A stretch of DNA of 64,000 nt, from the IMG/VR virus record IMGVR_UViG_3300032562_000003, positions 62,001-126,000 of that record. The stretch is one strand, 5' to 3'. A program made the position numbers and the translations under genes. This document shows positions 15,127-63,848 of the stretch, piece after piece (position 1 is the first letter of the stretch; each line of letters starts with the position of its first letter). The notes beneath the pieces were generated by a model, which did no database searches, was not told where the DNA came from, and saw only the letters and a program-made list of their open reading frames with translations.

Positions 15127-15504
15127 TTACTTTGCTTTTAGTTTAGCAACCAAAGCTTTAACTTTGTCTGTTGGGTTTTTTATAAGGTCAAATGCACGCA
15201 TGTCTCTTCGAACAGCAGCCAATTGTACTTTTTCGGTGGGGTTTTTTATATTCTGAATATGGTACGTTTCAGAGTTAATAATTTGTGCTTGTTCGGTTGG
15301 GTTTTGTATAAATCGTATTGCGGACGCCGCATCAGTTACCGCCGCAAGTTGTATTTGGGCTGAAGGATTTGTGATATCCCTTATAAGGAATCCATTTTTA
15401 GAAACTGTTTCAAATTGTACTTTTTCGGTAGGATTTTTTATATATATAAATGCACGTATGTCTCTTCGGACCGCAGCCAGTTGAACCTCTTCTGGTGGAT
15501 TATC
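15127..15504 (-). pseudogene. Frameshifted continuation of the KNP-x4-QLAAV repeats of the upstream ORF
   Basis: The alternate frame reads DNPPEEVQLAAVRRDIRAFIYIKNPTEKVQ...KLKAK* and has no start of its own at the junction. Confidence 0.8.
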
Positions 15505-16513
15505 TATATATGTAGCGTTTCATAGACATCGGATTAGTTTTAACCGCGGCCATCATAACCGCATTACTTGGATTTTTTATATAACGAATAAGGTATCCAT
15601 CAGACTCAACTGCAACTAGTTGCATTTGTTCAGTTGGGTTTTCTATGTATTGAATTATCTCAGGATCGGATGTTATTGCTGCTAATTTAACTGCATTACT
15701 TGGATTTTTTATATATTCTAGAGCTAGCAATGCCGAATCCGTAACTGCTGCTATTTTTTGTTTCTCAGTTGGGTTTTTTATGTATTTTAACATCTCAGCT
15801 GGACGATTGATAAACGCATCATTCCATATCTTTTTAGAAAAATAATGCGAGACTGATCTTACTTGTTCTATACCGAGTTCATTATCAGCCTCATCCATAA
15901 ACTGGGCAGTTTCAAAATGAAACTGCCACTTGTTCGGAAATTTCTTGAATAGAATTATATATATCTTGCCTTTTGTATTATAATGATTGAAATAATTTTC
16001 ACCCTTTGTGGCTGCTGTACACCACCGCGTGCCTCTACCATAATAACATGCTGCTGCCTCATCTTCTGGTATGATTATTCTTACATTATCATCTTCAAAA
16101 TAAAGAGTAGATTTTCCTTTGTTGACCTCCTTCGGATCAGTATTCAATTGTGAATACTTTGACATCATGGTATCTTCAAATTCTTTATATGTTTTAAATT
16201 TGTTGATGTCAGCGTCTTCTGGTTGAATTTGTCTTCTCTTCTTGCCTATATTATATGAACTTAAAACATCCATTCTGTTTAGGTCTTCGAACGGTACTCC
16301 GCCTTTGGCATACATACGAGCCAACCACTGAGTATATTCTTTATTTGGAGTTGGATCCTTAGTCTCTATCTTTTCTAAAATATCAGATGGTGTTATTCCG
16401 GACCTATAGGTCCTATAGGTGTTATCTTCGTACGCAACATGAATGAGCTTATCACCCAAAGTAGCGGCGGTCTTTGTTCTGTCATATTCAATAAGAAATT
16501 CATTTGCTCGCAT
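15500..16513 (-). CDS. PcfJ-like domain protein with DUF4116-like helical repeats
   Basis: DPTPNKEYTQWL, AACYYGRGTRWCTAA and repeated IKNPxxxxxxAAV. Leader MRANEFLIE. Confidence 0.7.
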   Translation of the reverse strand: MRANEFLIEYDRTKTAATLGDKLIHVAYEDNTYRTYRSGITPSDILEKIETKDPTPNKEYTQWLARMYAKGGVPFEDLNRMDVLSSYNIGKKRRQIQPEDADINKFKTYKEFEDTMMSKYSQLNTDPKEVNKGKSTLYFEDDNVRIIIPEDEAAACYYGRGTRWCTAATKGENYFNHYNTKGKIYIILFKKFPNKWQFHFETAQFMDEADNELGIEQVRSVSHYFSKKIWNDAFINRPAEMLKYIKNPTEKQKIAAVTDSALLALEYIKNPSNAVKLAAITSDPEIIQYIENPTEQMQLVAVESDGYLIRYIKNPSNAVMMAAVKTNPMSMKRYIYR

Positions 16514-16524
16514 GTATACACCAA

Positions 16525-17100
16525 TTATTGGAATATATAATGATGACGTTCACCATAAATTTTAATGTATTTGCCAGCTAAGAGGTCGGCCATCGCTTCG
16601 ATTGGGCTACCAGGATAGCTGTCACCAGGCTTAATCATACCTAGTTCACTTTGACGACAGTGTACGATTTCATGGAATACCGTTCTAAGAATATCTACTA
16701 GGTTTCTGTTCTTAGCATAAACCCAGATCGTGGGATCACCTTCAGTGTGCCTGCCAGTATGATGATTATGCTGAGCTTCTTCGGTGTCGTAGCTGAGGTC
16801 TACTTTAATGGGATTCTTTAGATGAACTCTACGTGAAGCCCATTCTGCAAACTTTTGTACTTCTTCGGGAATATTTAATTCTTCATCGGTTTCATCTAAC
16901 TTATTTTTGATCCAACTGTCAGGTGTAGAGCTATATCGCTTCACAAAAAGGTCGTGCAGGGCCTTACCAGTAATGTGATGCTTAGCAGCAATCTTTCGCA
17001 TTAGTTGGTCAATAGTGTTATAGTCGTGCTTTTCTAAAGATGGTAGCTTTTTGGCTAACTCACTAGCAGCAGACTCTAGAATGATTTCATTTCCGATCAT
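16525..17100 (-). CDS. Zincin-like metallopeptidase domain protein
   Basis: RTVFHEIVH (HExxH) with a downstream E in GSPIEAMAD. Confidence 0.7.
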   Translation of the reverse strand: MIGNEIILESAASELAKKLPSLEKHDYNTIDQLMRKIAAKHHITGKALHDLFVKRYSSTPDSWIKNKLDETDEELNIPEEVQKFAEWASRRVHLKNPIKVDLSYDTEEAQHNHHTGRHTEGDPTIWVYAKNRNLVDILRTVFHEIVHCRQSELGMIKPGDSYPGSPIEAMADLLAGKYIKIYGERHHYIFQ

Positions 17101-17124
17101 GAATATATTTATCTTACATATGAA

Positions 17125-17152
17125 TAACGGCGGAGATTGCTCCCCGCCGTTA
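17125..17152 (-). terminator. GC-rich hairpin after the OMP gene, probable terminator
   Basis: taacggcgg...ccgccgtta inverted repeat. Confidence 0.6.
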
Positions 17153-17173
17153 CTTTAATCAGTTCAAGTTTTA

Positions 17174-17734
17174 TTAAAAGTTGCGAGTATAGTTAACACC
17201 CAAGATGTCAGAGGTGACACTATTGCTACGAGTGCGATAGTAATTTACACCTACAATATTATCTTCGGTGATAGCAAAAGCGACACCGCCGTTAAGACGA
17301 TCTTCTGTAAAGGTAGGAGTGTTAGGTCCTTGACGATGACGATAACCAACGTTTACTGATACCGGGCCGTATACTTCATGCGAAACAGAAGCACCGTATC
17401 CCCAGAAGTTAAAGTCCTTATTAGTGTTCAGTGAACGGCCATACTCACCATAAGCAGCAGGAGTAAATCCTGCAACTGTGGGAAGTGCAGGGCCGCCTTG
17501 CAGCACGATCTTGCTGTTTAGAGTACCGTTATGATACGGTTGAGACCCGGTGAACTCGGCGCCGACATTAGCAATATTGGCAACAGTTTCACTATAGGTT
17601 AGACGATATTCAGTTGAGTTTGCTATCTTAGCAGGTTGCGGATCAATAGTACGAACTTCACCGGTGATAGATTCAGCAAGAGCCGGAGTAGCAACAGCCG
17701 CCGCAAGTGCTGCGATCAAGAATAACTTATTCAT
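17174..17734 (-). CDS. Outer-membrane beta-barrel protein
   Basis: Signal peptide ending ALA, alternating beta-strand pattern, and C-terminal VNYTRNF (BAM-type terminal Phe). Confidence 0.75.
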   Translation of the reverse strand: MNKLFLIAALAAAVATPALAESITGEVRTIDPQPAKIANSTEYRLTYSETVANIANVGAEFTGSQPYHNGTLNSKIVLQGGPALPTVAGFTPAAYGEYGRSLNTNKDFNFWGYGASVSHEVYGPVSVNVGYRHRQGPNTPTFTEDRLNGGVAFAITEDNIVGVNYYRTRSNSVTSDILGVNYTRNF

Positions 17735-17886
17735 AGATTGTATTTCCTTTTGTTAATCTGGCTTTTAAGGCCAGTGTATTGGTACCTGTGTAAGTCTTAT
17801 ATTGGTACCCACAAGAACCTATTAAGGAGCTTGAGATATATATTTAGTATGTATAACACTACTATAAACATATAACATATTGTAAG

Positions 17887-19923
17887 TTACTTTGAAGTTG
17901 CCCTATACACTCCATCCCAGTTAACTGGTGGATTCTTAGCATATTCCTCTATACGGTCAATCATTTCCGTGTAGTACTTGTTTAGCTCTCCGCTCCAGAA
18001 CTTCTTCATATTAGAAGCATATGTTCTAGCAGAGTCCCATTCACCCTTACGATAGCTATCCAAGAATCTCAAGTGTTGTTTTTCTCCCGATGCATCATAT
18101 GAAGATAGGACAGTATAGATGCGAGCCGGTTCAGTTTTTCCTTTGACTGCAATAAGATCAAGTTCTACTACCTGATATTCATCTCTCACGTATTCGGCAG
18201 TTTTTGGTCCGATGATGATTTTGACCCCGTACGGTTTAGATTGACCTTCGAGGCGAGATGCAAGATTGACGCCGTCCCCAAGACAAGTATAGTCAAACCG
18301 CTGAGTGCTACCCATATTACCAACAACCACAGTATCAGTATTAATACCGAGGCCCATTCCAAAAGCCGGGACTCCTTCCAGTGTAATCTCATCGTTAAAT
18401 CTCTCTAATGCCTTCATCATCTCAAACGCCGTCTTGACAGCATCCTTAGCGTGTTGTTGATTACTAAGAGGTGCATTCCAAAATGCCATCTGAGCATCAC
18501 CTATGTACTTATCGAGGGTGCCGTTGTTCTCTAGAATTGCTTTTGTCATCGCAGTCATATAGCGATTCATGATCTTTGTAAGACCTTGAACATCTTTGCC
18601 GTAATGTTCAGAAATAGTAGTAAATCCACGAACATCTGTAAACATAATAGAAAGTTCTCTAGAATCACCTCCAAGTTGTAATAGTTCTGGATTCTTTTGT
18701 AATTTTTCAACCATAGCTGGAGATAGATAAGTTCCAAATTGCTTTTTGATTTGTTGCTTCTGTAAGAATTCTGAGATAAACTTGATTGTATAAATGTGCA
18801 AATAAAGTATCATTGCAATAAGTGCATTAAATGTTACATCTATTAGAATATGATTATGATTAAACATATAAACGGGGAAGTAAAGATAAACACCAATAAG
18901 AGCTATAATCCAAACTACAGAGAATCTTACTTTAGATAACAAAATGATTCCGAGAGCCAATACTACTAAAAGTGCATAATCCAATATTCCAGCCCAGTTT
19001 GGAATAGAAACTGTATCTCCATTAATTAGAGTTTGAAGAAGACTAGCTTGAACTGCTTGTGGAAATTGTGCACCAACTGGAGTAGCTACTGGATTGGCCA
19101 CACCTGAAGCAGTTACACCAAGAATTACAATTTTATTAAGCAAATCTGGAGTTTTGTCTCCAATATCAAATTGAGTAAACTTATAGTTCCAGTTCACAAA
19201 TACTCTAGAGTACTCATCTGTTTTAATAGTATTGAATGATGGAATTCTTAAAGCTTCCACACCAGTCTCGTTAATCTTAGCTTGATAAGATGGATCACCG
19301 GAAATTGCTCTTAACATTTCCATAGAAAAAGATGGATAGTATTCACCTTGAGACATTGATAATAAAGGTACACGGCGAACAACACCATCAGATTCCGGTA
19401 AAGTAGAAGTTACACCAATACCAACAGCAGCATCTTGAAATTCTGAAATATTATTAAGAACTGAAGGATAATTTGGCAAAAACTGTGTAGTTTTACCATC
19501 TCCAATTATAGCCACACCAGTTTTACGAATATTTTGATTTGGCTTAGATTGCGTCGATAGTGTCTGAGATAAAATTATTGGATGCTGTTTTAAAGTAGCA
19601 GTAAGATTTTTGTCTGTATTAAATCTATCTGGTTCAGAAAAGATTATTGTATTTCCAATTACACCAACACGATGTAAATACAAATCGTTGATTATTTTAG
19701 AATAAGTTTCTCTTGGAAAAGGATATTGTCCATATTTCTCTATAGTCTTATCTGATATATTTGCAATTACAATCTGTTCAGACTGTTTTGCTGGACCACG
19801 CATAAGATAATCATAGTATTTTAATTTGATTGCATCTACCAAAAATGGATTGGATATTTTAATAGTAAGTAATAGAGCAAAAGTAATAATCGCAAGCCAA
19901 GGCGATAGAAGAATCTTTTTCAT
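17887..19923 (-). CDS. CHASE2-domain class III adenylate cyclase
   Basis: N-terminal TM, periplasmic CHASE2 (YGQYPFPR, DGVVRRVPL), three TMs, then FTDVRGFT, DKYIGD and GDGVNLASRLEG. Confidence 0.93.
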   Translation of the reverse strand: MKKILLSPWLAIITFALLLTIKISNPFLVDAIKLKYYDYLMRGPAKQSEQIVIANISDKTIEKYGQYPFPRETYSKIINDLYLHRVGVIGNTIIFSEPDRFNTDKNLTATLKQHPIILSQTLSTQSKPNQNIRKTGVAIIGDGKTTQFLPNYPSVLNNISEFQDAAVGIGVTSTLPESDGVVRRVPLLSMSQGEYYPSFSMEMLRAISGDPSYQAKINETGVEALRIPSFNTIKTDEYSRVFVNWNYKFTQFDIGDKTPDLLNKIVILGVTASGVANPVATPVGAQFPQAVQASLLQTLINGDTVSIPNWAGILDYALLVVLALGIILLSKVRFSVVWIIALIGVYLYFPVYMFNHNHILIDVTFNALIAMILYLHIYTIKFISEFLQKQQIKKQFGTYLSPAMVEKLQKNPELLQLGGDSRELSIMFTDVRGFTTISEHYGKDVQGLTKIMNRYMTAMTKAILENNGTLDKYIGDAQMAFWNAPLSNQQHAKDAVKTAFEMMKALERFNDEITLEGVPAFGMGLGINTDTVVVGNMGSTQRFDYTCLGDGVNLASRLEGQSKPYGVKIIIGPKTAEYVRDEYQVVELDLIAVKGKTEPARIYTVLSSYDASGEKQHLRFLDSYRKGEWDSARTYASNMKKFWSGELNKYYTEMIDRIEEYAKNPPVNWDGVYRATSK

Positions 19924-19942
19924 AGTATAATCCCCGTTTTAA

Positions 19943-21094
19943 TTATTTATTTGCTATATTAGTTTGAATTATAGTTATATGACCATTTGGTCTACCGGTT
20001 CCTGATGTTGGCCATTTCTGCTCAGAGAAGTTATAATAATCATAAGATCCGTCTTGTATTGTTGTAATATCTACACCAGTTGCTTTTGGTAAAACCACAG
20101 TAACAACTTCTAGTTTAGCTTGAGATAATAAAGAATATGCCCAACCAATTTGAATTTGTTTTTTCAAAAGTGGAGAAATATCTGTATATAAAGTCTGTTT
20201 TAATGGAGCATCAGAATTATATTCTTCATATACTTGTAATAATTCTGACGGAGTTGGAGTTCTTTGAAGAGCAGCAAACACTTGATTTAAATCATCCGTT
20301 CCAGTATTAGGATCTTGGTTATTGTCTGCGGCCGCCCCAGCTGGATTTACTTTATTCTTAATATCTTTTCTAGCTTGTGTTAATAGATTAGCTCCTCCTT
20401 CAAGAGAAGGAGTTGAAAGTTGAATATTATTATCTGCCGATCTTCCTTCCATACTAATTACTGATGGAGTGCTTGGGGGACCAGAAGATGTTTCTACGAC
20501 TGTAGCCTGGAATGGTTTATCCATTTTAACTACTCCAGCAGCAGTAGCTACTTCAATAGCTCCAGTTTCACATTCTTTATCCATTCTAATCTCACCATTA
20601 TTCATAAAGCATTCTGGAACTAAAATTACTGTAGTTCTTCCTACTTCATCTACAGACATAAGGAAATCTGTTCCACGAACAGCTATGGTGGCAGTTGGAG
20701 TTCTAATATCTACTGAATTTGGATTGTTGTGAGCAATTGCTCCGGAGGTATATCGTACTGTTCCTAAAGCTACTTTAAGTCCAAGTTTTCCTTTAGATTT
20801 CTCATTATCATCATATACAAAATCATCAATGACTAATTTACTATTTTCAGTAATGTTAACTTTAGTCTGATCATTAAATGTAATTCCAAACTTACCCTGA
20901 CTATTAGTTATGATGGTGTCCATCTTCTCTATACCTGAACTTTTATTTGCCGGTATAGTAGAAGATGAACGTTTTATTTGTCCGCCGCCTTTAAAATCTG
21001 TTATTGCACCAATACTAGCAAAAGCTGGAGTAGCTAACAGAAGAAAAAAACTAGTGGCCAGTCTTAATGTTAATGTTACCATTATTTCCAACAC
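19943..21094 (-). CDS. FecR-domain exported protein
   Basis: Signal peptide ending AFA; DQTKVNITENSKLVID and IRTPTATIAVRGTDF. Exact start uncertain. Confidence 0.85.
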   Translation of the reverse strand: MLEIMVTLTLRLATSFFLLLATPAFASIGAITDFKGGGQIKRSSSTIPANKSSGIEKMDTIITNSQGKFGITFNDQTKVNITENSKLVIDDFVYDDNEKSKGKLGLKVALGTVRYTSGAIAHNNPNSVDIRTPTATIAVRGTDFLMSVDEVGRTTVILVPECFMNNGEIRMDKECETGAIEVATAAGVVKMDKPFQATVVETSSGPPSTPSVISMEGRSADNNIQLSTPSLEGGANLLTQARKDIKNKVNPAGAAADNNQDPNTGTDDLNQVFAALQRTPTPSELLQVYEEYNSDAPLKQTLYTDISPLLKKQIQIGWAYSLLSQAKLEVVTVVLPKATGVDITTIQDGSYDYYNFSEQKWPTSGTGRPNGHITIIQTNIANK

Positions 21095-21857
21095 TTGTCA
21101 CATTAATAACAGTTTCAGTAGCTCCATATTGTTGTGTAGTAATAGCATTTCCAGTTCCTGTTAGATTTACATATAGACTGTGCCCATATGTGCCACCAAG
21201 GTCTGTTTGTGTAGTATTTAAAGTATTGTAATCACCAGATACTAAGATTGTTTGAGAAGCATTTGGTGAAATTGCAGACATTGTTAATGAGTTATTTCCA
21301 CCAGTAATATCAAGGGTAGTTGTAATATTAGCACCTGCACCATGATAATTTAGAGAATTACTATCACCTGTAAATCTAGCATTAAAGTTTAGACCGGTAC
21401 AACTCGCGTCGCCTAAACTACTTCCACAACGAATTAGAGCATAGTTGCTATTTCCAATTTGTTGAAGAGATAATGAAGCATTATCTGTTCCAGCAGTACC
21501 AGATACAACTGAGATTAGGGCTTCATTATTATTACCAGTTTGAATACCAATAATAGATTGGTTAGCTCCTCTCAAATATACAGGATCTGTAAAAGTACCA
21601 AAGATATTTGTCTGGCCAGTTTGTTTAATATTAATATTAACATTATCACCAGATTGATTAATATAAACATCATTTGTCGTTGACATACTATCAGCATTAT
21701 TTTGATTTGGTGAAGTTGCTATAATAGATGGTGCTGATGGCGCACCAGGTAATGCCGCAGTTGCTGGAGTTGCGGGACCAGTTGGCGATGCAGTTTGAGC
21801 TAATGCTGGTGTAGTAAATAGCATCGCCATTATTGCTAGTGTTTTTAATAGTTTCAT
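21051..21857 (-). CDS. Curlin-like repeat protein
   Basis: Signal peptide, Pro/Ala linker, and repeated QxGxxN (INQSGDN, KQTGQTN, IQTGNNN, QQIGNSN). Confidence 0.75.
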   Translation of the reverse strand: MKLLKTLAIMAMLFTTPALAQTASPTGPATPATAALPGAPSAPSIIATSPNQNNADSMSTTNDVYINQSGDNVNINIKQTGQTNIFGTFTDPVYLRGANQSIIGIQTGNNNEALISVVSGTAGTDNASLSLQQIGNSNYALIRCGSSLGDASCTGLNFNARFTGDSNSLNYHGAGANITTTLDITGGNNSLTMSAISPNASQTILVSGDYNTLNTTQTDLGGTYGHSLYVNLTGTGNAITTQQYGATETVINVTSVGNNGNINIKTGH

Positions 21858-22675
21858 TTGTGTTTCTCCTGTGTGGTTTTATAATGCCATAGCCCTATTT
21901 TTTCACCACTCTTTATTAATTCAACAACACCTGTTTCTATGGCAGATCGAATAGCATAATTTTCCGGCTCATTCTTAGTTTGTTGTGAATCTATTTCAAA
22001 AGCATTAGTTCCCTGATTAAAGAAAGTAAATGCGCTAATGCCTTCAGAAGTAGACAATAGATTCTTTTCTACAGATACTGAAGTAAGTACTTCTCCAGTC
22101 TGTACAGACACCAATCTCATATTAATTGTTACTTGATCTTGGATATACTGCGTGTTTGGTCCAATACCAAGATATCTAGCACCATTTCCTCCAGTTTTTA
22201 TAGAAGAATTATAATCTATAATTGCGCCTTCTAGCAATACTCCTGCAACTAAAAGTGGAGGAAGAGCTTGAGCCTTATCGCCTTGTTCTTGCTCTCTCAT
22301 TTGACGAATAAGTTGGCGCTCTTTTACTAAATCATCTAATCCTACTCTTTCAACTGGCTTAAACCATTTCCCATTTCCAGCTTCATAAAGTGCTTTTACA
22401 ACGTAAGCATCTGCTCCCTGAGTTACTGCGGTAGAAAATGAACTTACAGTTTGAGAAGGTTTTCTTTGACCAGTTTTATCAATAAATGAATATACCGCAA
22501 TTGGAATAGGTGTACCATCTAATTCTGGAATATTATCAAATATATGCGGTTGAGCTGTATGAGTTATCTTTGGTGAATCTTTTTGAAGAAAAGACTGGTT
22601 TAATGCCGGAATAGATCCACCTAAACAGCCAGATAGAAATACACAAAGAAATGGAACTATAATTATTCTCTTCAT
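21854..22675 (-). CDS. csgG: Curli secretion channel CsgG (lipoprotein)
   Basis: Lipobox LSGC; AVYSFIDKTGQRK, FSTAVTQGA, ERVGLDDLVKERQLIR and RLVSVQTGEVL. Confidence 0.92.
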   Translation of the reverse strand: MKRIIIVPFLCVFLSGCLGGSIPALNQSFLQKDSPKITHTAQPHIFDNIPELDGTPIPIAVYSFIDKTGQRKPSQTVSSFSTAVTQGADAYVVKALYEAGNGKWFKPVERVGLDDLVKERQLIRQMREQEQGDKAQALPPLLVAGVLLEGAIIDYNSSIKTGGNGARYLGIGPNTQYIQDQVTINMRLVSVQTGEVLTSVSVEKNLLSTSEGISAFTFFNQGTNAFEIDSQQTKNEPENYAIRSAIETGVVELIKSGEKIGLWHYKTTQEKHK

Positions 22676-24203: not shown

Positions 24204-26474
24204 TTATATTCTTTTAAAAAGAACATCACCCTTAATAGGAGTAATTAACTTGCTTTTATTTTGATTAAGCATCCCTGTTTGAAGATGCTTCACGATTTCA
24301 GGAGTTAAATGTCTAGCACGAAGTTCACCTAATCCAAACATATGAACCTCTACCGGATCGTCACCTTCTAAATCTTGAATAGCCAATATACGGTTACGAC
24401 CTTCGTGTCCTACTATTCTAGCTGACTCGCTGAAATCACCGTCTTCCCATTCAACGGGAAAATCAAAAATTAAAAATGGTGAACCTAATGCTCCGCCGGC
24501 CTGCATATGTTGTTTTATATGCTCTACTGATACTGGTTTATCTAAAGGTAGTGCCAAAGATAAGAATGTGCTAGGACGCATAAGAACACGCATTCCTCTG
24601 TACGCTACATTCGCATTGTATCCAGTAGCACCAAGACCTTCACCATTTATGTCGTTATCAACTTTATACTCGTTTACTGGCGAAGGTGTTGATCTATGAT
24701 TATTAGCTATTACTTGCATAATAGCATTAAATTTGTTTACTCTATCTTCAAGACCATGCAGCCCTGCGTTAATTGGTTTAGTCGCAGCCTGAGTATTGTT
24801 GAAATTAGTAACCTTAGGTGCAACTCTGTTTTGCCAAAACCAAACAGCAACCCTGGCTGCAACGTTTGGTCGTTCAACAAGTTCAGGTTGCTGCTCTAAT
24901 GGTAAACCTAAGGCTTTTCCTACCTTACGGTAATTTTCTCTACCTGTTAATTGAATGAATCCTCGCCCGTGATATCGTGCACCATCTCCTGGATGTGTGT
25001 TACCCAATAGCTTTGCTTTTTCTGGATTATATTTAGGATCATATTTCTTAAAATCTAATTTTCCGCCAAACTCTTTTAGTGACGAAAAATTTTGTGTCTC
25101 ATGTGCGCATTGTGCCAGAAACTGCGCAAGTTCGGTTCCGGTGATGCCAGCTGCCTGTGCTGCTCGTCTAAGTGCTACACCATATGGGTTAGTTAACCCG
25201 GACAGCGTTTGCTTTACTACAGCAGGATCAACCTTAGGTAATTGCACCTGATGTGATACCGGCATGTGTGGCGTAACTGGTTCTACTGTCTTGTTGGGCA
25301 TACCGTGCATACCCAAAGCTAATCCTGCAGCTACGCCCATACCTTTAGCGGCTGATTTCCAGTCTTCGTCTAATTCACTTGTAGAATTATCTTTGACTAG
25401 TGCCTTCTCTAATTTAGGATCAAGGGTAATTGCTAGCTTAACTGTATTAGGATTTGGATTTTTAATAAGTAGAATAGCAGCAGGATATTCGGTGACTGCT
25501 ATTTTTTGTACTTCCAGTGAAGGATTCTTGATGACCTGAATTGCGTCCGGAACTTCAATTACAATATCTCTTAATACCTTTTCATTTGGTTGAGGGTTCA
25601 TGCATCTCAATACAGAAGGACTATATACTGCTGCATCTACTAATAATCGATCCGGTATTTTAGATACATCTACATTATTACTAACTAGTTCTGAGATATA
25701 ATCATATGTATATTTGGTATTATTGATAAAAAGTAGATCCTTTTCTATAGATAAATCACGATCCACGTAGCTTCTCGGGCCGTATAACCAATCCTTTACG
25801 CGAGTTACTGCGCTAGAGTGCGGTACTCTAGCTAATTCAATTTTATCCTTTTTTTGTAAAGCTAGGTTGAGTAATTTTTCTGAAGATAACTTAGTTTCTG
25901 CTGCAAATGAACTGTGAGAAATTTCGTCATCCTCTGCATCAAAATATTGAGTATCCCCGTCGTATTCTGATCCTCGCATAGTGTTGTCAGAAGGCATTAG
26001 GTTGGTTACCGTGTGTGACGCGATTGCCCACTTGGCGCCGGACTGTTTATTGATACAATATATTAAAATAGATTCATCTTGATAGAAGTGTTGTTCAAAA
26101 TGACCTGGAGCACGTTTGGCTGTGCACCAATCAGTATTTTTACCATAGAAACAACTTGCATCTTTATCTAGAGGAACAATGACAAGCCACTTGTCATTGT
26201 CAACCAATGTAATACTTTTTCCAGGAATCTTTCCGCGCTTTAGTTGTCTTTTTGTTCTTGATGGATCGATAGAATTTACAAACTGCGTAAACTCACTAAA
26301 GGACTTCTTTCCCCACCAGTCAATATTTCGCTCAGTGCCACTAACTTGATTTTTGTTGACGAGTTCCTTAAAGGCGGCGATGGCTCTTTGTACATCCTCT
26401 GCAGGTACTCCTGAGTTAATATATTTCTGCGCTACTTCTTTGTAGCCCTCAGCGATGAATTCTGTTACTCGCAT
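24204..26474 (-). CDS. Multidomain protein: PcfJ-like, helical repeats, GH19 lysozyme-like and ParB-like
   Basis: SCFYGKNTDWCTA; KNP repeats; AQFLAQCAHET...YHGRGFIQLTGRENY; C-terminal IVGHEGRNR. Confidence 0.8.
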   Translation of the reverse strand: MRVTEFIAEGYKEVAQKYINSGVPAEDVQRAIAAFKELVNKNQVSGTERNIDWWGKKSFSEFTQFVNSIDPSRTKRQLKRGKIPGKSITLVDNDKWLVIVPLDKDASCFYGKNTDWCTAKRAPGHFEQHFYQDESILIYCINKQSGAKWAIASHTVTNLMPSDNTMRGSEYDGDTQYFDAEDDEISHSSFAAETKLSSEKLLNLALQKKDKIELARVPHSSAVTRVKDWLYGPRSYVDRDLSIEKDLLFINNTKYTYDYISELVSNNVDVSKIPDRLLVDAAVYSPSVLRCMNPQPNEKVLRDIVIEVPDAIQVIKNPSLEVQKIAVTEYPAAILLIKNPNPNTVKLAITLDPKLEKALVKDNSTSELDEDWKSAAKGMGVAAGLALGMHGMPNKTVEPVTPHMPVSHQVQLPKVDPAVVKQTLSGLTNPYGVALRRAAQAAGITGTELAQFLAQCAHETQNFSSLKEFGGKLDFKKYDPKYNPEKAKLLGNTHPGDGARYHGRGFIQLTGRENYRKVGKALGLPLEQQPELVERPNVAARVAVWFWQNRVAPKVTNFNNTQAATKPINAGLHGLEDRVNKFNAIMQVIANNHRSTPSPVNEYKVDNDINGEGLGATGYNANVAYRGMRVLMRPSTFLSLALPLDKPVSVEHIKQHMQAGGALGSPFLIFDFPVEWEDGDFSESARIVGHEGRNRILAIQDLEGDDPVEVHMFGLGELRARHLTPEIVKHLQTGMLNQNKSKLITPIKGDVLFKRI

Positions 26475-26477: not shown

Positions 26478-27458
26478 TTAAGCCAATTCGGGTTGTTCAG
26501 GATTTTCTTTGGGTTCTGATGCAAATGCTGTTGGGAAATCACGTTTTATTCGACCTACTTCTTCTGCGATGTTCCACCCACCGTGTGTAATTCCCATATC
26601 CTTAGAGGCTTGTTTGAGGTCTTCTGAATGTTTTTCTAAAGCACTAACAATTTGCTTCATCAATCCCGGAAATAATTCAGCAAATTCAGCATCATTACGG
26701 TGCGGATAGCCTCTGTTATTTTGGTTTGCATCTACTAGCTGATTAGTCTGAGAATGCATTTGCCACTTTCCCTTAGGGTCATTCATGTTTTTCTTATCGA
26801 TGATACTCACAATCGGACCGTCTTTAGAATATCGGTTGAACCAACGTTCACCGTCACTGCTACCAGTACAGAATGATGCCTGAACACCCTCTTCATTGTT
26901 GAATGTATAGCAAGAACCGTAATTCAATGGTACCATGACAAAAAAGCGGTCGTCATTAATCAAAATGATTTCCTTTTTGTCTCGCTTCATCTTTGCAATA
27001 CGCTCAGCATCTTTAATTCTGGCCAATGCGTCTCTGTATTCTCTGCTACGAACTACATTATATAATTGTTCTAAAGAACGAAATCTATTAAAGTCTTGAT
27101 GTTCTGGGCGAAGGAGATTACGAATACTAAGTGCCTTCCATTGACCAAGAGCAGGTACTCCTTCACCTGATATATCTTCATAATCAGCAACGTGATTCAT
27201 ATATAGTCTAAGCAACCACTGATCAAACTTACCATCTCTGGATAGATCACCATATTCAGAATTGGCCAAAGCATTGTCTACCATATTAGCCCAAAGTAGT
27301 GCGATGTCATGGTCAGATGCGTTTGGGCCAATCGACGCCCTTTTTGCAGCAGGAAAGGTATGATCATGGCGAAGAGCCAATGCGATCATTTTTTCTGTTT
27401 TTGGATCATTTGCTATTTTAGCAGCTATAGTCTCAGTGAGATTTACTCTAGTTTTCAT
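26478..27458 (-). CDS. PcfJ-like domain protein (divergent)
   Basis: VPLNYGSCYTF...SFCTGS...KWQMH, homologous to the domain in 15500, 24204 and 30087. Confidence 0.6.
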   Translation of the reverse strand: MKTRVNLTETIAAKIANDPKTEKMIALALRHDHTFPAAKRASIGPNASDHDIALLWANMVDNALANSEYGDLSRDGKFDQWLLRLYMNHVADYEDISGEGVPALGQWKALSIRNLLRPEHQDFNRFRSLEQLYNVVRSREYRDALARIKDAERIAKMKRDKKEIILINDDRFFVMVPLNYGSCYTFNNEEGVQASFCTGSSDGERWFNRYSKDGPIVSIIDKKNMNDPKGKWQMHSQTNQLVDANQNNRGYPHRNDAEFAELFPGLMKQIVSALEKHSEDLKQASKDMGITHGGWNIAEEVGRIKRDFPTAFASEPKENPEQPELA

Positions 27459-27463: not shown

Positions 27464-28501
27464 TTATACGTGCACCAATTCTTGCTTGAGGAAGGCCATC
27501 ACAGTTGATAACTTTTTAGTATCCCCGTTGATGATATCAGCAATAACCTTATTTGGACCGGCTGAATAAGCAGAACTAGCATTTGATAGCATTACTATAT
27601 AATGATCGCGGGGACCACCGCCGCGACTAATGTTTCCGGTTTCTTCAGGATAATAATAACCTGCTGCCATCAATATAGCTAAATTTAGCGTCTGATTAAG
27701 CACAGGCGGCAAAGCCTGTACTGACTTTGCTTGTTCCAGAGTGTCGTACAATTCTTGTAGACGCTTTGCTACTTGTAACTTTTTCTTGGCTCTATCGAAT
27801 GCGTCATTCTTAATAGAAATACCAACGGCTCCTTTAACGTCCGCTAATGCTTGTTGAACATATTTTCCTAACAGAGGACGTAACTTAGCCAATAGTACCT
27901 GTCTATTATGCGATGACCCGCGGTTTATATCATACATATTAGGAATAGTTAGGGCCTTTGCTTCTCTGCGTTTTGTGCGAAGTTGATCTACTGAAGTTTC
28001 AGATCCATGTGCAGCACTGTGATAAGCGCCAGGTCCACGAACACGATACGTTTTAGGATTAATCCAAAATCCAGTTATTTTACCGATATTAGATTTAATT
28101 TGGCTAGCTGCTGCGTTTATACTAGTAATTCTATCAGTCTGTATACCTTCACTATTCGCAGTTACCAAATAATAATGTCCACTTGCCCATTTTACAGCAG
28201 CGGTTCCTTTAGTACCTGCCATAAGAACAAAATTAGGTGCATAATCCTTAACATCAGTCCAACTAATAGAATCTACCGGAGCCCATTCTTGATTATGAGG
28301 CAATGATAAGCTACTGTGAATTGTCTTTATGAGTTGATCAGCATATGGGCTGTTTCTAACTGCGGACATTGCAGTAGATGCCTCAGAAAGAATCTCTGAT
28401 AGGAAATGTCCTACAGATTCAGTCAACTCGTTTGCCGGTTTTTTAGCTGAACCAATCATTGGTTTAGATACATTTTCGGATAGAAATTCTGTAACTCTCA
28501 T
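27464..28501 (-). CDS. Hypothetical protein with CTS-like leader
   Basis: Start reassigned to MRVTEFLSE at 28501. Confidence 0.7.
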   Translation of the reverse strand: MRVTEFLSENVSKPMIGSAKKPANELTESVGHFLSEILSEASTAMSAVRNSPYADQLIKTIHSSLSLPHNQEWAPVDSISWTDVKDYAPNFVLMAGTKGTAAVKWASGHYYLVTANSEGIQTDRITSINAAASQIKSNIGKITGFWINPKTYRVRGPGAYHSAAHGSETSVDQLRTKRREAKALTIPNMYDINRGSSHNRQVLLAKLRPLLGKYVQQALADVKGAVGISIKNDAFDRAKKKLQVAKRLQELYDTLEQAKSVQALPPVLNQTLNLAILMAAGYYYPEETGNISRGGGPRDHYIVMLSNASSAYSAGPNKVIADIINGDTKKLSTVMAFLKQELVHV

Positions 28502-28503
28502 AA

Positions 28504-28968: not shown

Positions 28969-30090
28969 TTATGCTTCTTGACTCACATCCACGTACTTAA
29001 TTGGTTTCCTATTTAATATCGCTGCTAATGCACGATGATGCCCGTCGACTACAATTCCGTCGTTCATGACAATAATACTATTTGATAAATTAGGATCTGA
29101 TCTATATGAATCTACAATATCTTCTTGATCAGAATCTAGCATGTCATAAATTTCATCGATATGATCTACGCCATATTGACTTTTAAATAGTAGTTCCAGT
29201 TTAACTGGTGAAATAGTTTGAACTGTAAAAGGTACATTAAAGTCTGAGTCACCTACAAAATTCCAAATCATCTCATCGTGATCTGGGAGACCCTTACTAT
29301 ACAACTGTTTCAATGTAATCTTATTTTCTGATGAAAAATCCTCATATGTCATAGCAGTAATACGATGAGGTCCTTTGGTTTTGAATTGACCATACTCTTG
29401 TTCATATGTAGTTGGACCCCCGACCATCGATCCGCCGCCTATCCCGGCCGAACCTCCGCCCTGACCAGTACTGATGGTTTCTCTCAGCTTCTCAACATCA
29501 GCAATAGGATCAGTGATAACAGGAATGTCACCTTTTCTCCAAAGTATGTTACTTATACCTACATCTATTACAACGGTTCCACCTGCTGCACTTCTAATAA
29601 AATCCAAAACTGGTTTTAGTTGAGGGAATTCTTCAAAAAGTGTAGTTTCTTCTGCGTATGGGCGCCGCGGATATACCTCTAAATATTCTTGTATCTGATA
29701 TCTAATATTTTTTCTCTCTAAAGTGAATAGATTTTTGTTATCCAACAACTCCATTCGCATTAGATTAAATCTGCGCAATAACTTTACTGGGCGGCCAATA
29801 ATCTTTGGAACATGTGGGTTAGATTGATTCTGTAACACAAAAGAAAGATAGGTGTCATATGCAGGATCATCTTTCCAAAGCTTGATGATACTGTCTTCGC
29901 CGGGACGCTTGAATGCTGTGCCGAAACAACCTGAGCCTAATACGTATTGCTGATATCCTGCCAGTTTTAAGGCATCCAAAAATTCTTCCATATTTCTGCT
30001 GTTCTGCAACAGAGAATACACTGGATCTTTCTTATAACCAGTTAACTCGTTGAGCGGTTCATTTTCAGAGATGAATTCTCGGGCTCTCAT
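28969..30090 (-). CDS. Protein-kinase-like domain fused to a ParB-like domain
   Basis: LGSGCFGTAF, IIKLW, PHVPKI, RMELL, DVGISNI and ITDP; C-terminal VVDGHHRALAA. Confidence 0.75.
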   Translation of the reverse strand: MRAREFISENEPLNELTGYKKDPVYSLLQNSRNMEEFLDALKLAGYQQYVLGSGCFGTAFKRPGEDSIIKLWKDDPAYDTYLSFVLQNQSNPHVPKIIGRPVKLLRRFNLMRMELLDNKNLFTLERKNIRYQIQEYLEVYPRRPYAEETTLFEEFPQLKPVLDFIRSAAGGTVVIDVGISNILWRKGDIPVITDPIADVEKLRETISTGQGGGSAGIGGGSMVGGPTTYEQEYGQFKTKGPHRITAMTYEDFSSENKITLKQLYSKGLPDHDEMIWNFVGDSDFNVPFTVQTISPVKLELLFKSQYGVDHIDEIYDMLDSDQEDIVDSYRSDPNLSNSIIVMNDGIVVDGHHRALAAILNRKPIKYVDVSQEA

Positions 30091-31376
30091 TTGTTTCTTT
30101 CGATCAAATCTACGTCCCAGCTACCATCTTTCTTTTTTTGTACAAGAACGTTCTTTACCAAATATTTAGCAATACCAGTGTCATGTAGTCGGCTACCTCT
30201 AAAATGGTTTAACAACATGTCTGATATTATGCTTGGTGTGTCATCTATTCCGACACCGACATAATCACCTTCTTGTGTCATCTCTTGCGTGCAGGCCTTC
30301 AGATGACGCGGTGATGGTGTAACTATGCTTTCAATATTATCCACCCATTCTTTAGCATCTGGATTCCAAGACATATAATCGTTACCTGCTGCATATGCTG
30401 CGTCCCAATCAATATCTCCGTCCTCATCGCCATAAAGTTCTCTCATGTCTCGATAATAATAATCGTCATTCTGTTCCCATTCCGCAATTTCTTCGTATGC
30501 CTTATCCATAGCTATTTGACTAATTTTAGTAATAACCGAAGTCAGAACGTCGTCATCTGCAAATAATATGCTGTTTTTAATTGCTGGTTCATTTTCTCTA
30601 AAGAATGAGGACAAATCTCCAAATCTTTTGGTAATTAATTCCTCTACGTTTACTGGAGAATCGGCTTCATCCATGAATGAACCGGTTTGAAAATGTATTT
30701 GGTATTTTTCACCGTCGCGTTTAGGATGTTTTGGTATCAAGATATACAATTTACCTTGACTACTATAATTTTTGAAGTAGTTCGTTCCTTTAGTTGCAGC
30801 AGTACACCAGCGGGTGCCTCTTCCATAGTAACATGCAGCGGCTTCGTCCTCAGGAACAATTATGCGTACTTGTTCATTGTCAAATATTGTGTTAGCCTGA
30901 CCCTTTTCTTTAGCTTTTGCAGAATCCGCACCTTCAATCTGATCTAAATCATAATTACTCAGCATAGTATCTTCAAATTCTTTGTAGTTTTTGAATCGAT
31001 TAATATCAGCATGTTCTGGTTTAATCATCCTGCGTTTCTTACCTAAATTGTAGATACCAAGTAGATTTCCTCTGTTTAAGTCCTCTAACTTCACTCCACC
31101 TTTAGCATACATTCTAGCAAGCCACTGAGTGTATTCTTTATTTGGTGTTGGATCTTTTTCTTCTATAGCCTGCAATATGTGTTGAATTATGTCGGCTTTG
31201 TCGGCCTCAGTAGCCTTATTACCAGGTACTAGAACTTCTCTAGCGAATTGCCTGTATACCATCATATTACCACTAATGGCGCCCATATCCTTAGCAAATG
31301 CAGGAATGAGACCAGTACCTAGTGTCTGTGCGGTTTTGTTTCTATCATATTCAATTAGAAACTCTATGGCTCGCAT
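30087..31376 (-). CDS. PcfJ-like domain protein, close paralog of 15500-16513
   Basis: Shares DPTPNKEYTQWLARMYAKGG and EDEAAACYYGRGTRWCTAATKG, with a different acidic C-terminus. Confidence 0.75.
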   Translation of the reverse strand: MRAIEFLIEYDRNKTAQTLGTGLIPAFAKDMGAISGNMMVYRQFAREVLVPGNKATEADKADIIQHILQAIEEKDPTPNKEYTQWLARMYAKGGVKLEDLNRGNLLGIYNLGKKRRMIKPEHADINRFKNYKEFEDTMLSNYDLDQIEGADSAKAKEKGQANTIFDNEQVRIIVPEDEAAACYYGRGTRWCTAATKGTNYFKNYSSQGKLYILIPKHPKRDGEKYQIHFQTGSFMDEADSPVNVEELITKRFGDLSSFFRENEPAIKNSILFADDDVLTSVITKISQIAMDKAYEEIAEWEQNDDYYYRDMRELYGDEDGDIDWDAAYAAGNDYMSWNPDAKEWVDNIESIVTPSPRHLKACTQEMTQEGDYVGVGIDDTPSIISDMLLNHFRGSRLHDTGIAKYLVKNVLVQKKKDGSWDVDLIERNK

Positions 31377-33367: not shown

Positions 33368-34456
33368 TTAACCCTTTTTGTTTTTGTTATCTAGATAGCC
33401 ACGCTTGTTGACCGTGGCCCATGCAATATCTGTTGCTTTCTTTGCTGGCTTGCCGGCTTCACGTTCTGACTTAGCAATGTGCTTAACCATGCGATCTACT
33501 TTGGCACCTTCGTCAGTTACCTTCTTACCGAAGTCTTCCATATCTTGCCAGGGGCTACCCTTGCTAGGTTCTCTACTGATGATTTTTCTAGTGGTGCCTA
33601 GATCGTCGTGATTGTCTTTGCGCCACTTCTTATAATCTTGTACTTCTTTCTCGCCGCCCTGTTTACCTTCGCTTAACTCTTCTTCCATGCTATCAGCTAC
33701 GCTACCTAGATAGTCACTAGCTAAAGTGATATAGCTTTGCTGCCATGCCATTAATTCATCACGCTCATCTAGCATTTGATAGATTCTTTTTGCGGCTTTA
33801 GCAGCGCTACGCATTTCGCTCTTAGCCATGCTTATCTCATGATCGAAGTGTTCTTGGTTTTCACCGACGCCACCGGCGGCAATAACACCTTCTGATTGTT
33901 GTTTCTTGCTAACCATGTAATTATTAACATTGGTCATCATGCCCTTAATCTGGCCGACCTTCTCACTTACCCATTCAGGAATACTATCACAATTTTCTAA
34001 TACGTCATATAGTTCTTTTGCATTACGTGATATTGTTCTGAGACTGTTCTTTAGAGTTTCACCTTCGTGTTCTGCTTTATCCGGATCAAATGAATGGAAT
34101 CCAGTCTTCAATCTATGACCTTGGCCTGGCACAAGAATCAAATCGTCTTCTTCTAATTGTGCTTCTTGTATCTTGAATCTTGCTCTAATTTGTTCTTTGG
34201 TAGCCTTGTACTTTTTCTGAAAGTTTAGATTGTCAAGGTAATCTAAATCTGACGCGAGTTCCTTCATCTTACCTTCATGAAGGGAATTAGCAAATTTCTT
34301 GTTGGTCTTCTTACCGGTAAGAAGATTCCCGGGCTTTTGATTAGCGTAGACTCCTTTGCCTACAGTTGAACGTTTTTGTGTTGCGCCGGCCATTGGCTGT
34401 GCGACAGTAGCAATCGCGCCTGAGGTCGTACTTTCATAGATATCGCTAATTTTCAT
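33368..34456 (-). CDS. Probable head/internal protein with a duplicated helical domain
   Basis: Leader MKISDIYES; two related units (HEGETLKNSL...PEWVSEKV and HEISMAKSEM...AWQQSYITLASDYL). Confidence 0.6.
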   Translation of the reverse strand: MKISDIYESTTSGAIATVAQPMAGATQKRSTVGKGVYANQKPGNLLTGKKTNKKFANSLHEGKMKELASDLDYLDNLNFQKKYKATKEQIRARFKIQEAQLEEDDLILVPGQGHRLKTGFHSFDPDKAEHEGETLKNSLRTISRNAKELYDVLENCDSIPEWVSEKVGQIKGMMTNVNNYMVSKKQQSEGVIAAGGVGENQEHFDHEISMAKSEMRSAAKAAKRIYQMLDERDELMAWQQSYITLASDYLGSVADSMEEELSEGKQGGEKEVQDYKKWRKDNHDDLGTTRKIISREPSKGSPWQDMEDFGKKVTDEGAKVDRMVKHIAKSEREAGKPAKKATDIAWATVNKRGYLDNKNKKG

Positions 34457-34496
34457 GAATCAAATCCTTAGTAGTGTAGTATTTATGCTGATTGAT

Positions 34497-35271: not shown

Positions 35272-35302
35272 AAAAAGGGAGGGAAGATTTCTCTCCCCTC
35301 CC
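35272..35302 (-). terminator. Rho-independent terminator
   Basis: gggagggaaga...tctcccctccc hairpin followed by TTTTT on the minus strand. Confidence 0.65.
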
Positions 35303-61837: not shown

Positions 61838-61838
61838 A

Positions 61839-61865: not shown

Positions 61866-62135
61866 TCAGTCGTCGGCTTCGTCTTCCTCACCCGACTCAC
61901 TAGCATCTACAATCTCATCAATTAATTCTTCGGTCAGCCATCCAGCCTCTCTGAGAAAATCTACTGACTTTACAAACAGACTAAACATAGTAGCAGTAAA
62001 ATCATAGTTTGGAACAGTGTTTTGTTTTTCAAGAAGTTCTTCGATTACTGCATTTGCCTGCTGATCGCATACTGCTAAATCAAAGTAGTATACCGTACCA
62101 TCATCTAGAATTTCAATCACTTCATTGTCTTTCAT
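61866..62135 (-). CDS. Acidic hypothetical protein
   Basis: 89 aa, Asp/Glu-rich. Confidence 0.7.
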   Translation of the reverse strand: MKDNEVIEILDDGTVYYFDLAVCDQQANAVIEELLEKQNTVPNYDFTATMFSLFVKSVDFLREAGWLTEELIDEIVDASESGEEDEADD

Positions 62136-62157
62136 TTTAATGCTTTCTTAGCTAAAA

Positions 62158-62736
62158 TTACCTAGTGCGCTCATAACCAGTCACTGGATCAGTTATAACA
62201 ATAGTTTTCCCACGCATCATGATATTACCTAAATGCATATCCATATTTACCTTAGGTAACGTAGCGATAAGATCACACGCTTCAGTTATACCAGGCTGCG
62301 TCTGTTCTAAGACATACATAGCTTGAATATCACGCTCCAGATTGGCCGGCCAGCTTAGCAGCTTAGCACTATGCCATATATAACTCTCTAGCACACTCAC
62401 CATATCGTACATGTCTCTAGTTCTAACTACAGGACTGAGCTTTTCCATTCGAATTGCGTTATAGTTATCATTGACTCTCATGAATGACCCACGAAACTTC
62501 GGAAAATGCGGATTAGGATTGGACATGCACATTCTAACATATCTCGCATACGCTCTATCATCTGAGCTAACCAACTTTAATACGTAGGATTTGTCTTTTC
62601 TCCACCAAACGTTAGCATACAACCCATGACCTAATTTTTGATATCCTGCTTTTTCTAGAATATCCTCAGCCGTCCGCTGATCGGGACGTGTTACTTCTGT
62701 TAACTCTGATTCATTTAGGAGTTCTTGAATCTTCAT
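62158..62736 (-). CDS. Protein-kinase-like enzyme
   Basis: LGHGLYANV, VLKL, PHFPKF, RMEKL, DMHLGNIM and ITDP. Leader MKIQELLNES. Confidence 0.8.
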   Translation of the reverse strand: MKIQELLNESELTEVTRPDQRTAEDILEKAGYQKLGHGLYANVWWRKDKSYVLKLVSSDDRAYARYVRMCMSNPNPHFPKFRGSFMRVNDNYNAIRMEKLSPVVRTRDMYDMVSVLESYIWHSAKLLSWPANLERDIQAMYVLEQTQPGITEACDLIATLPKVNMDMHLGNIMMRGKTIVITDPVTGYERTR

Positions 62737-62738
62737 GA

Positions 62739-63320
62739 CTATAACTTCTTGATCAGAACGCCGGCCGGTCCCAGCTTAAACGGAGAAACCTCAAATTTAT
62801 CACCCAACACAGATTCTACATACTGCTGTAGTTCTTTTGTAGTAAATCCTTTTTGGTAAGTGCCGGTACTTGTAACAATGCTCATTGGCTCAGGACCCGG
62901 TTTACCTTTAGCGTCAAGAACATCTCTTCCGCGCGTTGTAATCAGAGCTATGCCACCAGACTTCAACACTCTACCAATATGTTTTACGATTTCTTTTCTG
63001 GTCTTAGGTGGAACCACATTCAGTACATTGAAGTTCGTTACCTTTTCATAGCTGTCATTAGGAATGTCTGCTGCATGATCATACGTAGGCGTGAACTTAC
63101 CTTTAGGAAATGGTTCGTAAGTATCTGCACCAAGAATGTGACTACCGTGTCCTAACCCTGCACCGAAATCCAAAACTTTACCATGCGCAGAGTGAGTATC
63201 TAAATGTGCCTTAGCTTTTGTATAGGTAGGAGCGGTTCCACTAATCTGAGTTTTTTGTGATTTCTCAGGATCTGGAAATTCAAAATCTTCTACCGATTCA
63301 AATAGTTCTTGGATTTTCAT
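62739..63320 (-). CDS. Class I SAM-dependent methyltransferase
   Basis: VLDFGAGLG and FNVLNVV. Leader MKIQELFES. Confidence 0.85.
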   Translation of the reverse strand: MKIQELFESVEDFEFPDPEKSQKTQISGTAPTYTKAKAHLDTHSAHGKVLDFGAGLGHGSHILGADTYEPFPKGKFTPTYDHAADIPNDSYEKVTNFNVLNVVPPKTRKEIVKHIGRVLKSGGIALITTRGRDVLDAKGKPGPEPMSIVTSTGTYQKGFTTKELQQYVESVLGDKFEVSPFKLGPAGVLIKKL

Positions 63321-63335
63321 GTATAACCGTTTACA

Positions 63336-63848
63336 TCATAACCCTGTGATTCTAGGATCACGGGCGGCGCCATATATCGGTTTATTGTTTCGAGACGGAC
63401 TTTTTATATTTGATTTCTTTGATATTCGGTACCTAATTTTTCTCAATGCTCTATCCAGTCGTTGGCGTATTCCTTCGCGGTTTATACCAAGCTTTTCTCC
63501 TATCTGCTCTAGAGACATTTCAGGGACTCCGATACCAAAAGCCATTCTAGCTAGGCGTTCTTCCAATGGATCTAGATCAAGCAAAATAGAATTGACTATT
63601 TTACGAACATCAGCAGCTTGGATGGCTGCGTTAGGATCTTCTTCAGAATCTGGAGTATTATAAGCTTTGTGTATTAGCGTAGTAATCTCTTGTGGATCGT
63701 CTACTATTTCCATTGGTTCTGGTAGTTGCGGTCCCTTACCAGAGAAAAAAGACCGTTGAAAGTTTGTGGGACCAAGCTTGCTGTCATCGTCAGGATTGTT
63801 GTTCTCATTGATTATGTCAATGTATGTTCTGAAAAGGTCTGCGCTCAT
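63336..63848 (-). CDS. Sigma70 region-4 domain protein (no regions 1-3)
   Basis: LDPLEERLARMAFG...MSLEQIGEKLGINREGIRQRLDRALRKIR. Confidence 0.85.
   Translation of the reverse strand: MSADLFRTYIDIINENNNPDDDSKLGPTNFQRSFFSGKGPQLPEPMEIVDDPQEITTLIHKAYNTPDSEEDPNAAIQAADVRKIVNSILLDLDPLEERLARMAFGIGVPEMSLEQIGEKLGINREGIRQRLDRALRKIRYRISKKSNIKSPSRNNKPIYGAARDPRITGL

Follow-up and report, generated by a model that had tools for sequence, protein, structure and literature searches.

Why should genes for such different proteins as a kinase, a methyltransferase, a sigma region-4 protein and a wall hydrolase fusion begin with nearly the same few residues? The question is raised by a 64,000-nucleotide stretch of the IMG/VR virus record IMGVR_UViG_3300032562_000003 (positions 62,001 to 126,000 of that record; hereafter the window), in which 11 minus-strand genes open with a short leader, with the core form M-[R/K]-x-x-[E/D]-hydrophobic-hydrophobic-x-E and with [L/I]-x-E at the end in all 11. 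A sequence-only reading of the window had taken this leader for a tag like the capsid-targeting sequence (CTS) of phage T4, which would address enzymes to the capsid for ejection into the host. Having examined the leader in the window, in related contigs and in a phage with virion data, we consider it probable, by analogy with T4, that it is a T4-type CTS in a new phage clade with a large set of enzyme payloads.

The leader in the window

All eight N-termini that had been quoted for the leader were located at their minus-strand starts, as were the three looser versions at 17100, 27458 and 63848. The leader spans residues 1-8/9, or residues 1-15 in the 63848 protein. Translating the window in all six frames gave seven occurrences of a strict motif (M-[KR]-x-x-[ED]-h-h-x-E, h being hydrophobic; a looser form was scored separately), and six of the seven are gene starts. 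The strict motif was found at 6/72 N-termini vs 1/421 internal Met positions (Fisher p = 5e-5) and the loose motif at 9/72 vs 1/421 (p = 1.7e-7), where N-terminal composition leads one to expect 0.010-0.015 per 72 genes. Window genes lie nearly all on the minus strand. The ATG at 28501 is internal to the open reading frame (ORF) 27464-28543, and it is likely the true start, being only 2 nt past the stop of the gene upstream and the exact point at which homologs start.

The bodies behind the leader are partly related. The proteins of 15500-16513, 30087-31376, 26478-27458 and 24204-26474 have one domain in common, called group A here, and those of 28969-30090 and 62158-62736 form a paralogous pair; despite this paralogy, at least five unrelated bodies within the window bear the leader. 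Core replication and metabolic genes had been said to lack it, and this was borne out for the replication, nucleotide-metabolism and chaperone genes: the split family-B DNA polymerase, clamp loader, PhoH, ClpA-like and DnaJ genes are leaderless, and so are those for GTP cyclohydrolase I, PTPS, a radical-SAM enzyme and a ferritin-like protein.

In T4, the protease gp21 cuts after Glu at L/I-x-E, and ten N-terminal residues of the internal protein IPIII are enough for targeting to the head, with a part in targeting for residues 4 and 7 and in processing for residues 8 and 10 (PMC9026906). The T4 CTS string on which the likeness had been based is correct (PMC8442874). The claim of a CTS-like tag stood in two respects: the 26474 protein has E-F-I-A-E in common with the T4 CTS, and the gp21 site L/I-x-E is present in all leaders. 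Phe6 of the 9-mer leader, the counterpart of T4 Phe7, is near-invariant, and the counterpart of T4 Tyr4 is Ala, Val or Ile in 9-mer leaders and Phe or Leu in 10-mer variants.

Portability across viral contigs

A back-translated leader DNA pattern was scanned against the viral contig collection, with a codon-permuted pattern of equal composition as control; a match counted as an ORF start if a stop lay within 30 codons upstream. The leader pattern matched at least 120 stretches vs 19 for the control. Among the matches listed (97 in 80 loci), 94 begin an ORF that runs for 60 codons or more, the remaining three end at contig ends, and ORF starts make up 82/93; in the control, 3/19 open such an ORF and none lies at an ORF start. 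The 94 leader proteins of these matches comprise 27 mutually dissimilar body families, including GH19, T7-like kinases, GNAT and DUF6267. A loose leader is present on 130/946 ORFs of the same loci, and leader genes there form tandem arrays of up to five. PA5oct homologs were detected in the short fetched stretch at 58/80 of these loci and homologs of window core genes at 32/80, so that almost all occurrences of the leader appear to fall within one phage clade. The leader comes in variants of 8, 10 (T4 spacing) and 15 residues, T4-spaced 10-mers being found in relatives (e.g., MKTFVEYLTE). Salicola phage SCTP-2 has its own gene array with related leaders, with the group A domain on some of its genes and absent from others.

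Bodies are also exchanged between syntenic loci. On a related 360-kb contig, the syntenic locus (L096) has kept its flanking genes along with the leaders MKISDIFES, MRAKEFITES and, in two copies, MRAKHFLDLYEA, and the bodies differ from those of the window. One leader protein has an Amidoligase_2 body; in another, a SleB-type hydrolase replaces the GH19 domain of 24204-26474, with the same C-terminal domain; and the C-terminal half of the 28969-30090 protein recurs on a leaderless GGACT protein. At the locus after the major capsid protein (MCP) gene, the sigma region-4 protein of the window and a different protein in a second relative (L032) have only the first 15 residues in common, 11/15 being identical. 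The body families, the body swaps at syntenic loci and the control scan together give strong support to the claim of a modular tag-plus-payload system, in which the leader is a portable module on unrelated bodies. None of the papers searched reports such a leader for PA5oct- or Rak2-type phages.

Selection on the leader and its place in predicted structures

Synonymous positions vary freely among the 96 distinct leader DNAs of the matches listed, and leader position 3 is Ala in 95/96 of them although the pattern allowed Val; selection is therefore on the peptide and not on RNA. The leader is better conserved than the bodies among homologs of the 62158-62736 kinase, of the 345-aa protein (27464-28501) and of group A. 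Searches with the body only found the leader in about 10/14 homologs of the kinase (13 with 32-51% body identity) and, for the 345-aa protein, in the majority of homologs, the terminal Glu being lost from some distant ones. With the sigma region-4 protein, the body-only search gave the protein itself alone. In AlphaFold models, the only N-terminal parts of low confidence (predicted local distance difference test, pLDDT, <50) are residues 1-19 of the kinase and residues 1-6 of the group A protein of 30087-31376, whose model has a pLDDT of 92 and a first helix from residue 12. The leader is thus predicted to lie outside the folds.

The phage and its head module

A DNA-level search with 20 kb of the window against cultured phages gave no match, and window genes recur on several Joint Genome Institute (JGI) metagenome contigs. 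One contig (L001) extends past the right end of the window, where it encodes a T4-type portal, a small core protein, an acidic core protein, a Peptidase_S77 protease, a scaffold-like protein and a Gp23-type capsid protein. The leader genes at 62-64 kb follow directly downstream of this head module, in which Portal_T4 and Gp23 domains were matched. The prohead protease belongs to the gp21 family (Peptidase_S77 E = 2.3e-25, phrog_207 E = 8e-57), and the 363-aa gene between the protease and MCP genes is a scaffold gene by position only. The MCP shares 66% identity with its counterpart in the Pseudomonas jumbo phage PA5oct; for the Rak2/121Q/BF group the figure is 63%. Because of this head module and these MCP identities, the source is, on its gene content, a T4-superfamily jumbo phage related to PA5oct that encodes the protease a CTS would need. 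A conserved small core protein after the portal has a leader-like start in every relative, its PA5oct version being the virion protein gp150, and the N-terminus of the scaffold protein is leader-like too. The portal gene (L001 1-1906) is interrupted by an intein, with PF14890 between two Portal_T4 matches.

Virion data from PA5oct

The GenBank record of PA5oct flags 93 virion proteins on the basis of tandem mass spectrometry with electrospray ionization (ESI-MS/MS; PMC7318152). One of them, gp205, is matched by the group A proteins of the window. Among the PA5oct counterparts of the pooled leader ORFs, gp202, gp205 and gp349 are flagged and have leader-like N-termini, and one is unflagged; this is 3/4 vs a genome-wide rate of about 21%. 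Comparison of the motif with virion membership had been proposed as a check. When PA5oct proteins were ranked by a score defined from the window leaders, three of the top five were flagged (p = 0.035), the rest were unenriched and the rank test was not significant. Virion membership in PA5oct lends weak support to packaging by the leader.

Payloads of the leader genes

The functions that had been assigned to the leader proteins fared unequally (Table 1). The kinase of 62158-62736 is well founded, with a match to phrog_15752 (E = 1e-13), a kinase fold in AlphaFold and Foldseek (model pLDDT 84; top matches all protein kinases or aminoglycoside phosphotransferases, probability 1.0) and invariant Lys54, Asp166 and Asn171 in its family. 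The second kinase, at 28969-30090, is weaker, having a PHROG match at E = 1e-6 and paralogy to the first over its N-terminal half. Domain matches confirmed the methyltransferase (62739-63320), the sigma region-4 protein (63336-63848) and the GH19 fusion (24204-26474). The metallopeptidase label of 16525-17100 did not hold up, as it goes back to the HEIVH motif alone and no peptidase family was matched in Pfam or PHROGs. Six homologs of this protein in other contigs have a canonical MRAxEFLSE at the same place. Its residues 15-64 are 46% identical to residues 477-525 of a 544-aa cytidylyltransferase-like (NMN adenylyltransferase-type) protein encoded at 36277-37911.

Further observations concern single genes of the cluster. 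The 27464-28501 protein has a second [FY][LI]xE motif at residues about 36-44, where it stands twice in tandem, and its most distant homologs (P0026-P0029) begin just ahead of this second motif, which hints that it might act as another leader or as a further site of cleavage. In the 33368-34456 family, the leader is followed by a second conserved motif, roughly S-x-x-G-[AS]-[IV]-A-T-V-A-x-P, which has members in the window gene, in L096 (6731-7402) and at the loci L159, L170, L149, L152 and L171, and which is found also in very short ORFs of 61-81 aa. A leaderless ferritin/Dps-like gene (28504-28947) lies inside the leader cluster, and its position is conserved in relatives.

The most expanded payload is group A. 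The 15500-16513 and 30087-31376 proteins are 55% identical starting at residue 1, and the family comprises 6,273 clusters at E <= 1e-3; among the best 150 homologs, 73 have a loose leader and most others have near variants (e.g., Gln5). These proteins had been called PcfJ-like, a label that found no backing: neither the window proteins nor 45 family members had a Pfam match at E <= 5, and the fold match to proteins named PcfJ-like was faint (E = 0.012, template modelling score, TM, 0.17). The PDB gave neither a sequence match nor a fold match for this payload. The group A domain also occurs within giant proteins of 1,500-1,860 aa (P0089, P0113, P0125, P0154, P0171) and in proteins predicted from Marseillevirus-like giant viruses of eukaryotes. 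This breadth hints at a widely used domain with no function yet assigned.

Table 1. Leader genes, candidate leader genes and expression signals, in window coordinates unless stated otherwise.
Position	Strand	Feature	N-terminus	Remarks
15500..16513	-	337-aa protein, group A domain and C-terminal repeat region	MRANEFLIE	PA5oct gp205 homolog
16525..17100	-	191-aa protein, function unassigned	MIGNEIILE (diverged)	HEIVH at residue 143
24204..26474	-	756-aa protein, group-A-related N-terminal region, GH19 (residues 446-589), C-terminal domain	MRVTEFIAE	
26478..27458	-	326-aa group A paralog	MKTRVNLTE (loose)	L-x-E retained
27464..28501	-	345-aa protein, function unassigned	MRVTEFLSE	
28969..30090	-	373-aa protein, kinase-like N-terminal half	MRAREFISE	Paralog of 62158..62736
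30087..31376	-	429-aa group A protein	MRAIEFLIE	
33368..34456	-	362-aa protein, function unassigned	MKISDIYES	First gene of main cluster; L096 homolog starts MKISDIFES
61866..62135	-	89-aa acidic protein	MKDNEVIE	Weak candidate, P3 without L/I
62158..62736	-	192-aa minimal protein kinase	MKIQELLNE	
62739..63320	-	193-aa class I methyltransferase	MKIQELFES	
63336..63848	-	170-aa sigma-70 region-4 protein	15-residue leader variant ending I-N-E	
63900..64000 (L001 8864-9421)	-	GNAT acetyltransferase gene, 3' end	MKISEMTM (partly leader-like)	
34480..34486	-	ATAAATA, T4-late-promoter-like		24 nt upstream of first main-cluster gene (34456)
63867-63873, 17106-17112	-	Further ATAAATA sites		Precede leader groups at 63848 and 17100
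35277..35302	-	Terminator-like hairpin		Upstream of main cluster
23843-23867		Terminator-like hairpin		Closes main cluster

Expression context

The first gene in each leader group (63848, 34456, 17100) is preceded by ATAAATA. The same heptamer, which is the core of the T4 late promoter, stands ahead of the tail-fibre genes 61359, 59806 and 55521 and of the head-core gene L001 2843. In total there are 14 sites on the coding strand, 11 of them between genes and ten at a distance of 4-58 bases from the start codon that follows. The T4 late promoter in its exact form, TATAAATA, was not found on the coding strand, and scans of the cluster for sigma-70 promoters and terminators were overall at chance level. 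This arrangement fits late co-expression of the leader genes with structural genes, so far as promoter-like motifs can indicate it.

Neighbouring genes

Elsewhere in the window, a minus-strand block at 17174-23139 encodes curli-type secretion proteins, CsgF (22675-23139) and CsgG (21854-22675), beside a FecR-domain protein (19943-21094), a protein with CHASE2 and adenylate/guanylate cyclase domains (17887-19923) and two more secreted proteins; all have signal peptides and the block is conserved in L096, L134 and L144. The family-B DNA polymerase is split into 13112-14791 and 10953-12197 (region 10953-14791), and between the halves a plus-strand 299-aa gene (12252-13151) resembles a Hef-like homing endonuclease of PA5oct, which has the same split polymerase arrangement. 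At 663-6342, likely 7-deazaguanine DNA-modification genes, for GTP cyclohydrolase I (4424-5104), PTPS/QueD (3702-4211) and a radical-SAM QueE-like protein (2231-3112), lie beside glycosyltransferase-like genes (663-2000, 5167-6342) and a gene for an HhH-GPD protein.

Proposed mechanism and its alternatives

By analogy with T4, we infer that the leader proteins bind to the core, are cleaved, are kept in the head and are later ejected. They would be made late in infection together with the head proteins, and their first 8-15 residues would attach to the scaffolding core while the prohead assembles. Peptidase_S77, the protease of the gp21 family encoded beside the scaffold and capsid genes, would then cut after the Glu of [L/I]-x-E, and the mature payloads would stay alongside the DNA inside the head until the next infection, when they would pass into the host cell. 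So delivered would be, among others, both kinase-like proteins, the methyltransferase, the sigma region-4 protein, the fusion with a GH19 wall hydrolase and all four group A proteins.

Several observations weigh against this mechanism. The terminal Glu is lost in some homologs and position 5 is Gln in others. The group A leader is followed directly by a conserved EYxRxKTA stretch, so that tag and body are inseparable within that group. The virion data come from PA5oct, a relative, and the phage of the window is known from its genes alone. In PA5oct, non-leader ORFs of the same loci correspond to flagged genes in 39/74 cases, a rate that leaves the local comparison of 3/4 not significant; the strict motif picks out two flagged and two unflagged ORFs (p = 0.13); and PA5oct itself hardly uses the canonical leader. 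Its reported promoters (TATAATA/TTGAC) are of another type, and the late-promoter reading depends on one 7-base motif. In relatives, the region after the MCP gene is hypervariable and leader genes are not kept beside it; across 80 MCP loci, only 4/851 ORFs had a strict or loose leader where leader genes were expected. Finally, wall hydrolases packaged in the head would need to reach the periplasm.

The leader could also direct proteins into the prohead to serve inside the head or in its assembly, as core, DNA-condensing or maturation factors, and not as ejected effectors. The leader-like N-termini of the small core and scaffold proteins agree with this, group A, the most expanded payload, has no enzymatic signature or known fold, and the PA5oct counterparts are annotated as structural proteins only. 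However, a kinase, a methyltransferase, a GNAT protein, a sigma region-4 protein, an amidoligase and wall hydrolases have no obvious role in a capsid, the loci are hypervariable as expected of host-interaction genes, and the CTS-bearing internal proteins and Alt of T4 are ejected (PMC9026906, PMC3012670), all of which makes such a role unlikely. Another kind of N-terminal signal seems to us quite unlikely as well, be it for recognition by a phage Clp system that limits the lifetime of dangerous enzymes, for localisation or for translation initiation. In being short and disordered the leader resembles a degron, and both this phage (ClpA-like, 39818-42082) and PA5oct encode Clp components. Yet free synonymous variation excludes an element at the RNA level, the leader is, as read from its sequence, insufficiently hydrophobic for a secretion signal, and the invariant terminal [L/I]-x-E together with the E-F-I-A-E identity is specific to the gp21 system. 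The leader is, moreover, confined to a clade with an S77 protease, and three PA5oct counterparts are in virions.

That the N-termini are alike merely through common descent of paralogs, with no function of their own, is highly improbable. Several window proteins are indeed paralogous over hundreds of residues, the 15500/30087 pair with its 55% identity among them, but the same leader stands on 27 body families with no detectable similarity, and leader conservation exceeds body conservation. Paralogy as the sole explanation was rejected on these unrelated families and on the pair of proteins at one locus, in the window and in L032, which are alike in their first 15 residues only.

Implications

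If the leader is a CTS, the principle would extend from T-even phages to a distant clade of jumbo phages, and the enzymes among the virion proteins of PA5oct-like phages would be explained. Provided that its action is that of the T4 tag, a simple pattern, or the eye, could pick out probable injected proteins in huge uncultured phages and so give a candidate list of host-takeover or counter-defence factors, most of them with no function assigned. A bolder proposal is that the leader is a sequence-readable address label that lists all head-packaged, host-injected proteins in an abundant uncultured clade of T4-superfamily jumbo phages. The list would cover dozens of unrelated families, among them kinases, acetyltransferases and methyltransferases, sigma-like factors, amidoligases and wall hydrolases, together with a family of no known fold (more than 6,000 clusters), a repertoire far larger and more enzymatic than that of any known T4-type phage; for this proposal we judge the case to be evenly balanced. 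A short tag of this kind could also serve as a packaging handle in jumbo-phage engineering, like the T4 CTS.

Comparison with known systems

The closest likeness is to the CTS of T4 (IPI, IPII, IPIII and Alt, with removal by gp21), an N-terminal peptide of about ten residues that ends in L/I-x-E and whose last five residues recur in the 26474 protein. In both systems, the tag is common to unrelated proteins, a gp21-family protease, a scaffold and a Gp23-type capsid protein are encoded together, and the loci are variable. The phage family is another one, however, and the usual leader, with the consensus MRAxEF[IL]xE, is one residue shorter; here, known from genes alone, there are 8-, 10- and 15-residue variants on at least 27 body families. 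The payloads are encoded in tandem arrays and are for the most part enzymes of 190-760 aa, whereas those of T4 are small basic proteins.

In the phiKZ-like giants (phiKZ, 201phi2-1 and SPN3US), head-internal or ejected proteins are likewise cut after Glu by a diverged gp21 homolog, and conserved N-termini are found on diverged paralogs; their propeptides are mostly longer than 100 residues with an S/A-x-E motif, and a short portable tag has not been described for them (PMC5694885, PMC9026906). The phage of the window differs from these giants in having a short leader of T4 type and L/I-x-E. A precedent for a wall-degrading domain that is carried in the head and ejected is T7 gp16, whose lytic transglycosylase domain is part of an internal core protein of a podovirus. 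This protein has no CTS-type leader or gp21-type processing.

The repertoire of kinase, methyltransferase, peptidoglycan hydrolase, acetyltransferase and amidoligase domains also recalls the polyvalent proteins of phages and conjugative elements, whose domains are considered to pass into the recipient cell together with the DNA (Iyer et al. 2017, PMC5512222). In those proteins the domains are fused in one giant polypeptide, whereas here they are mostly separate genes with leaders of their own; a few group A homologs are giant multidomain proteins, and the Kinase-PolyVal match among the leader payloads is weak. The tag principle is already established in T4, and the novelty claimed by the sequence-only reading is overstated, because diverse T-even internal proteins with only the conserved CTS in common were already known (PMC3012670). 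What is new here, and notable, is the clade, the scale and the mainly enzymatic nature of the payloads.

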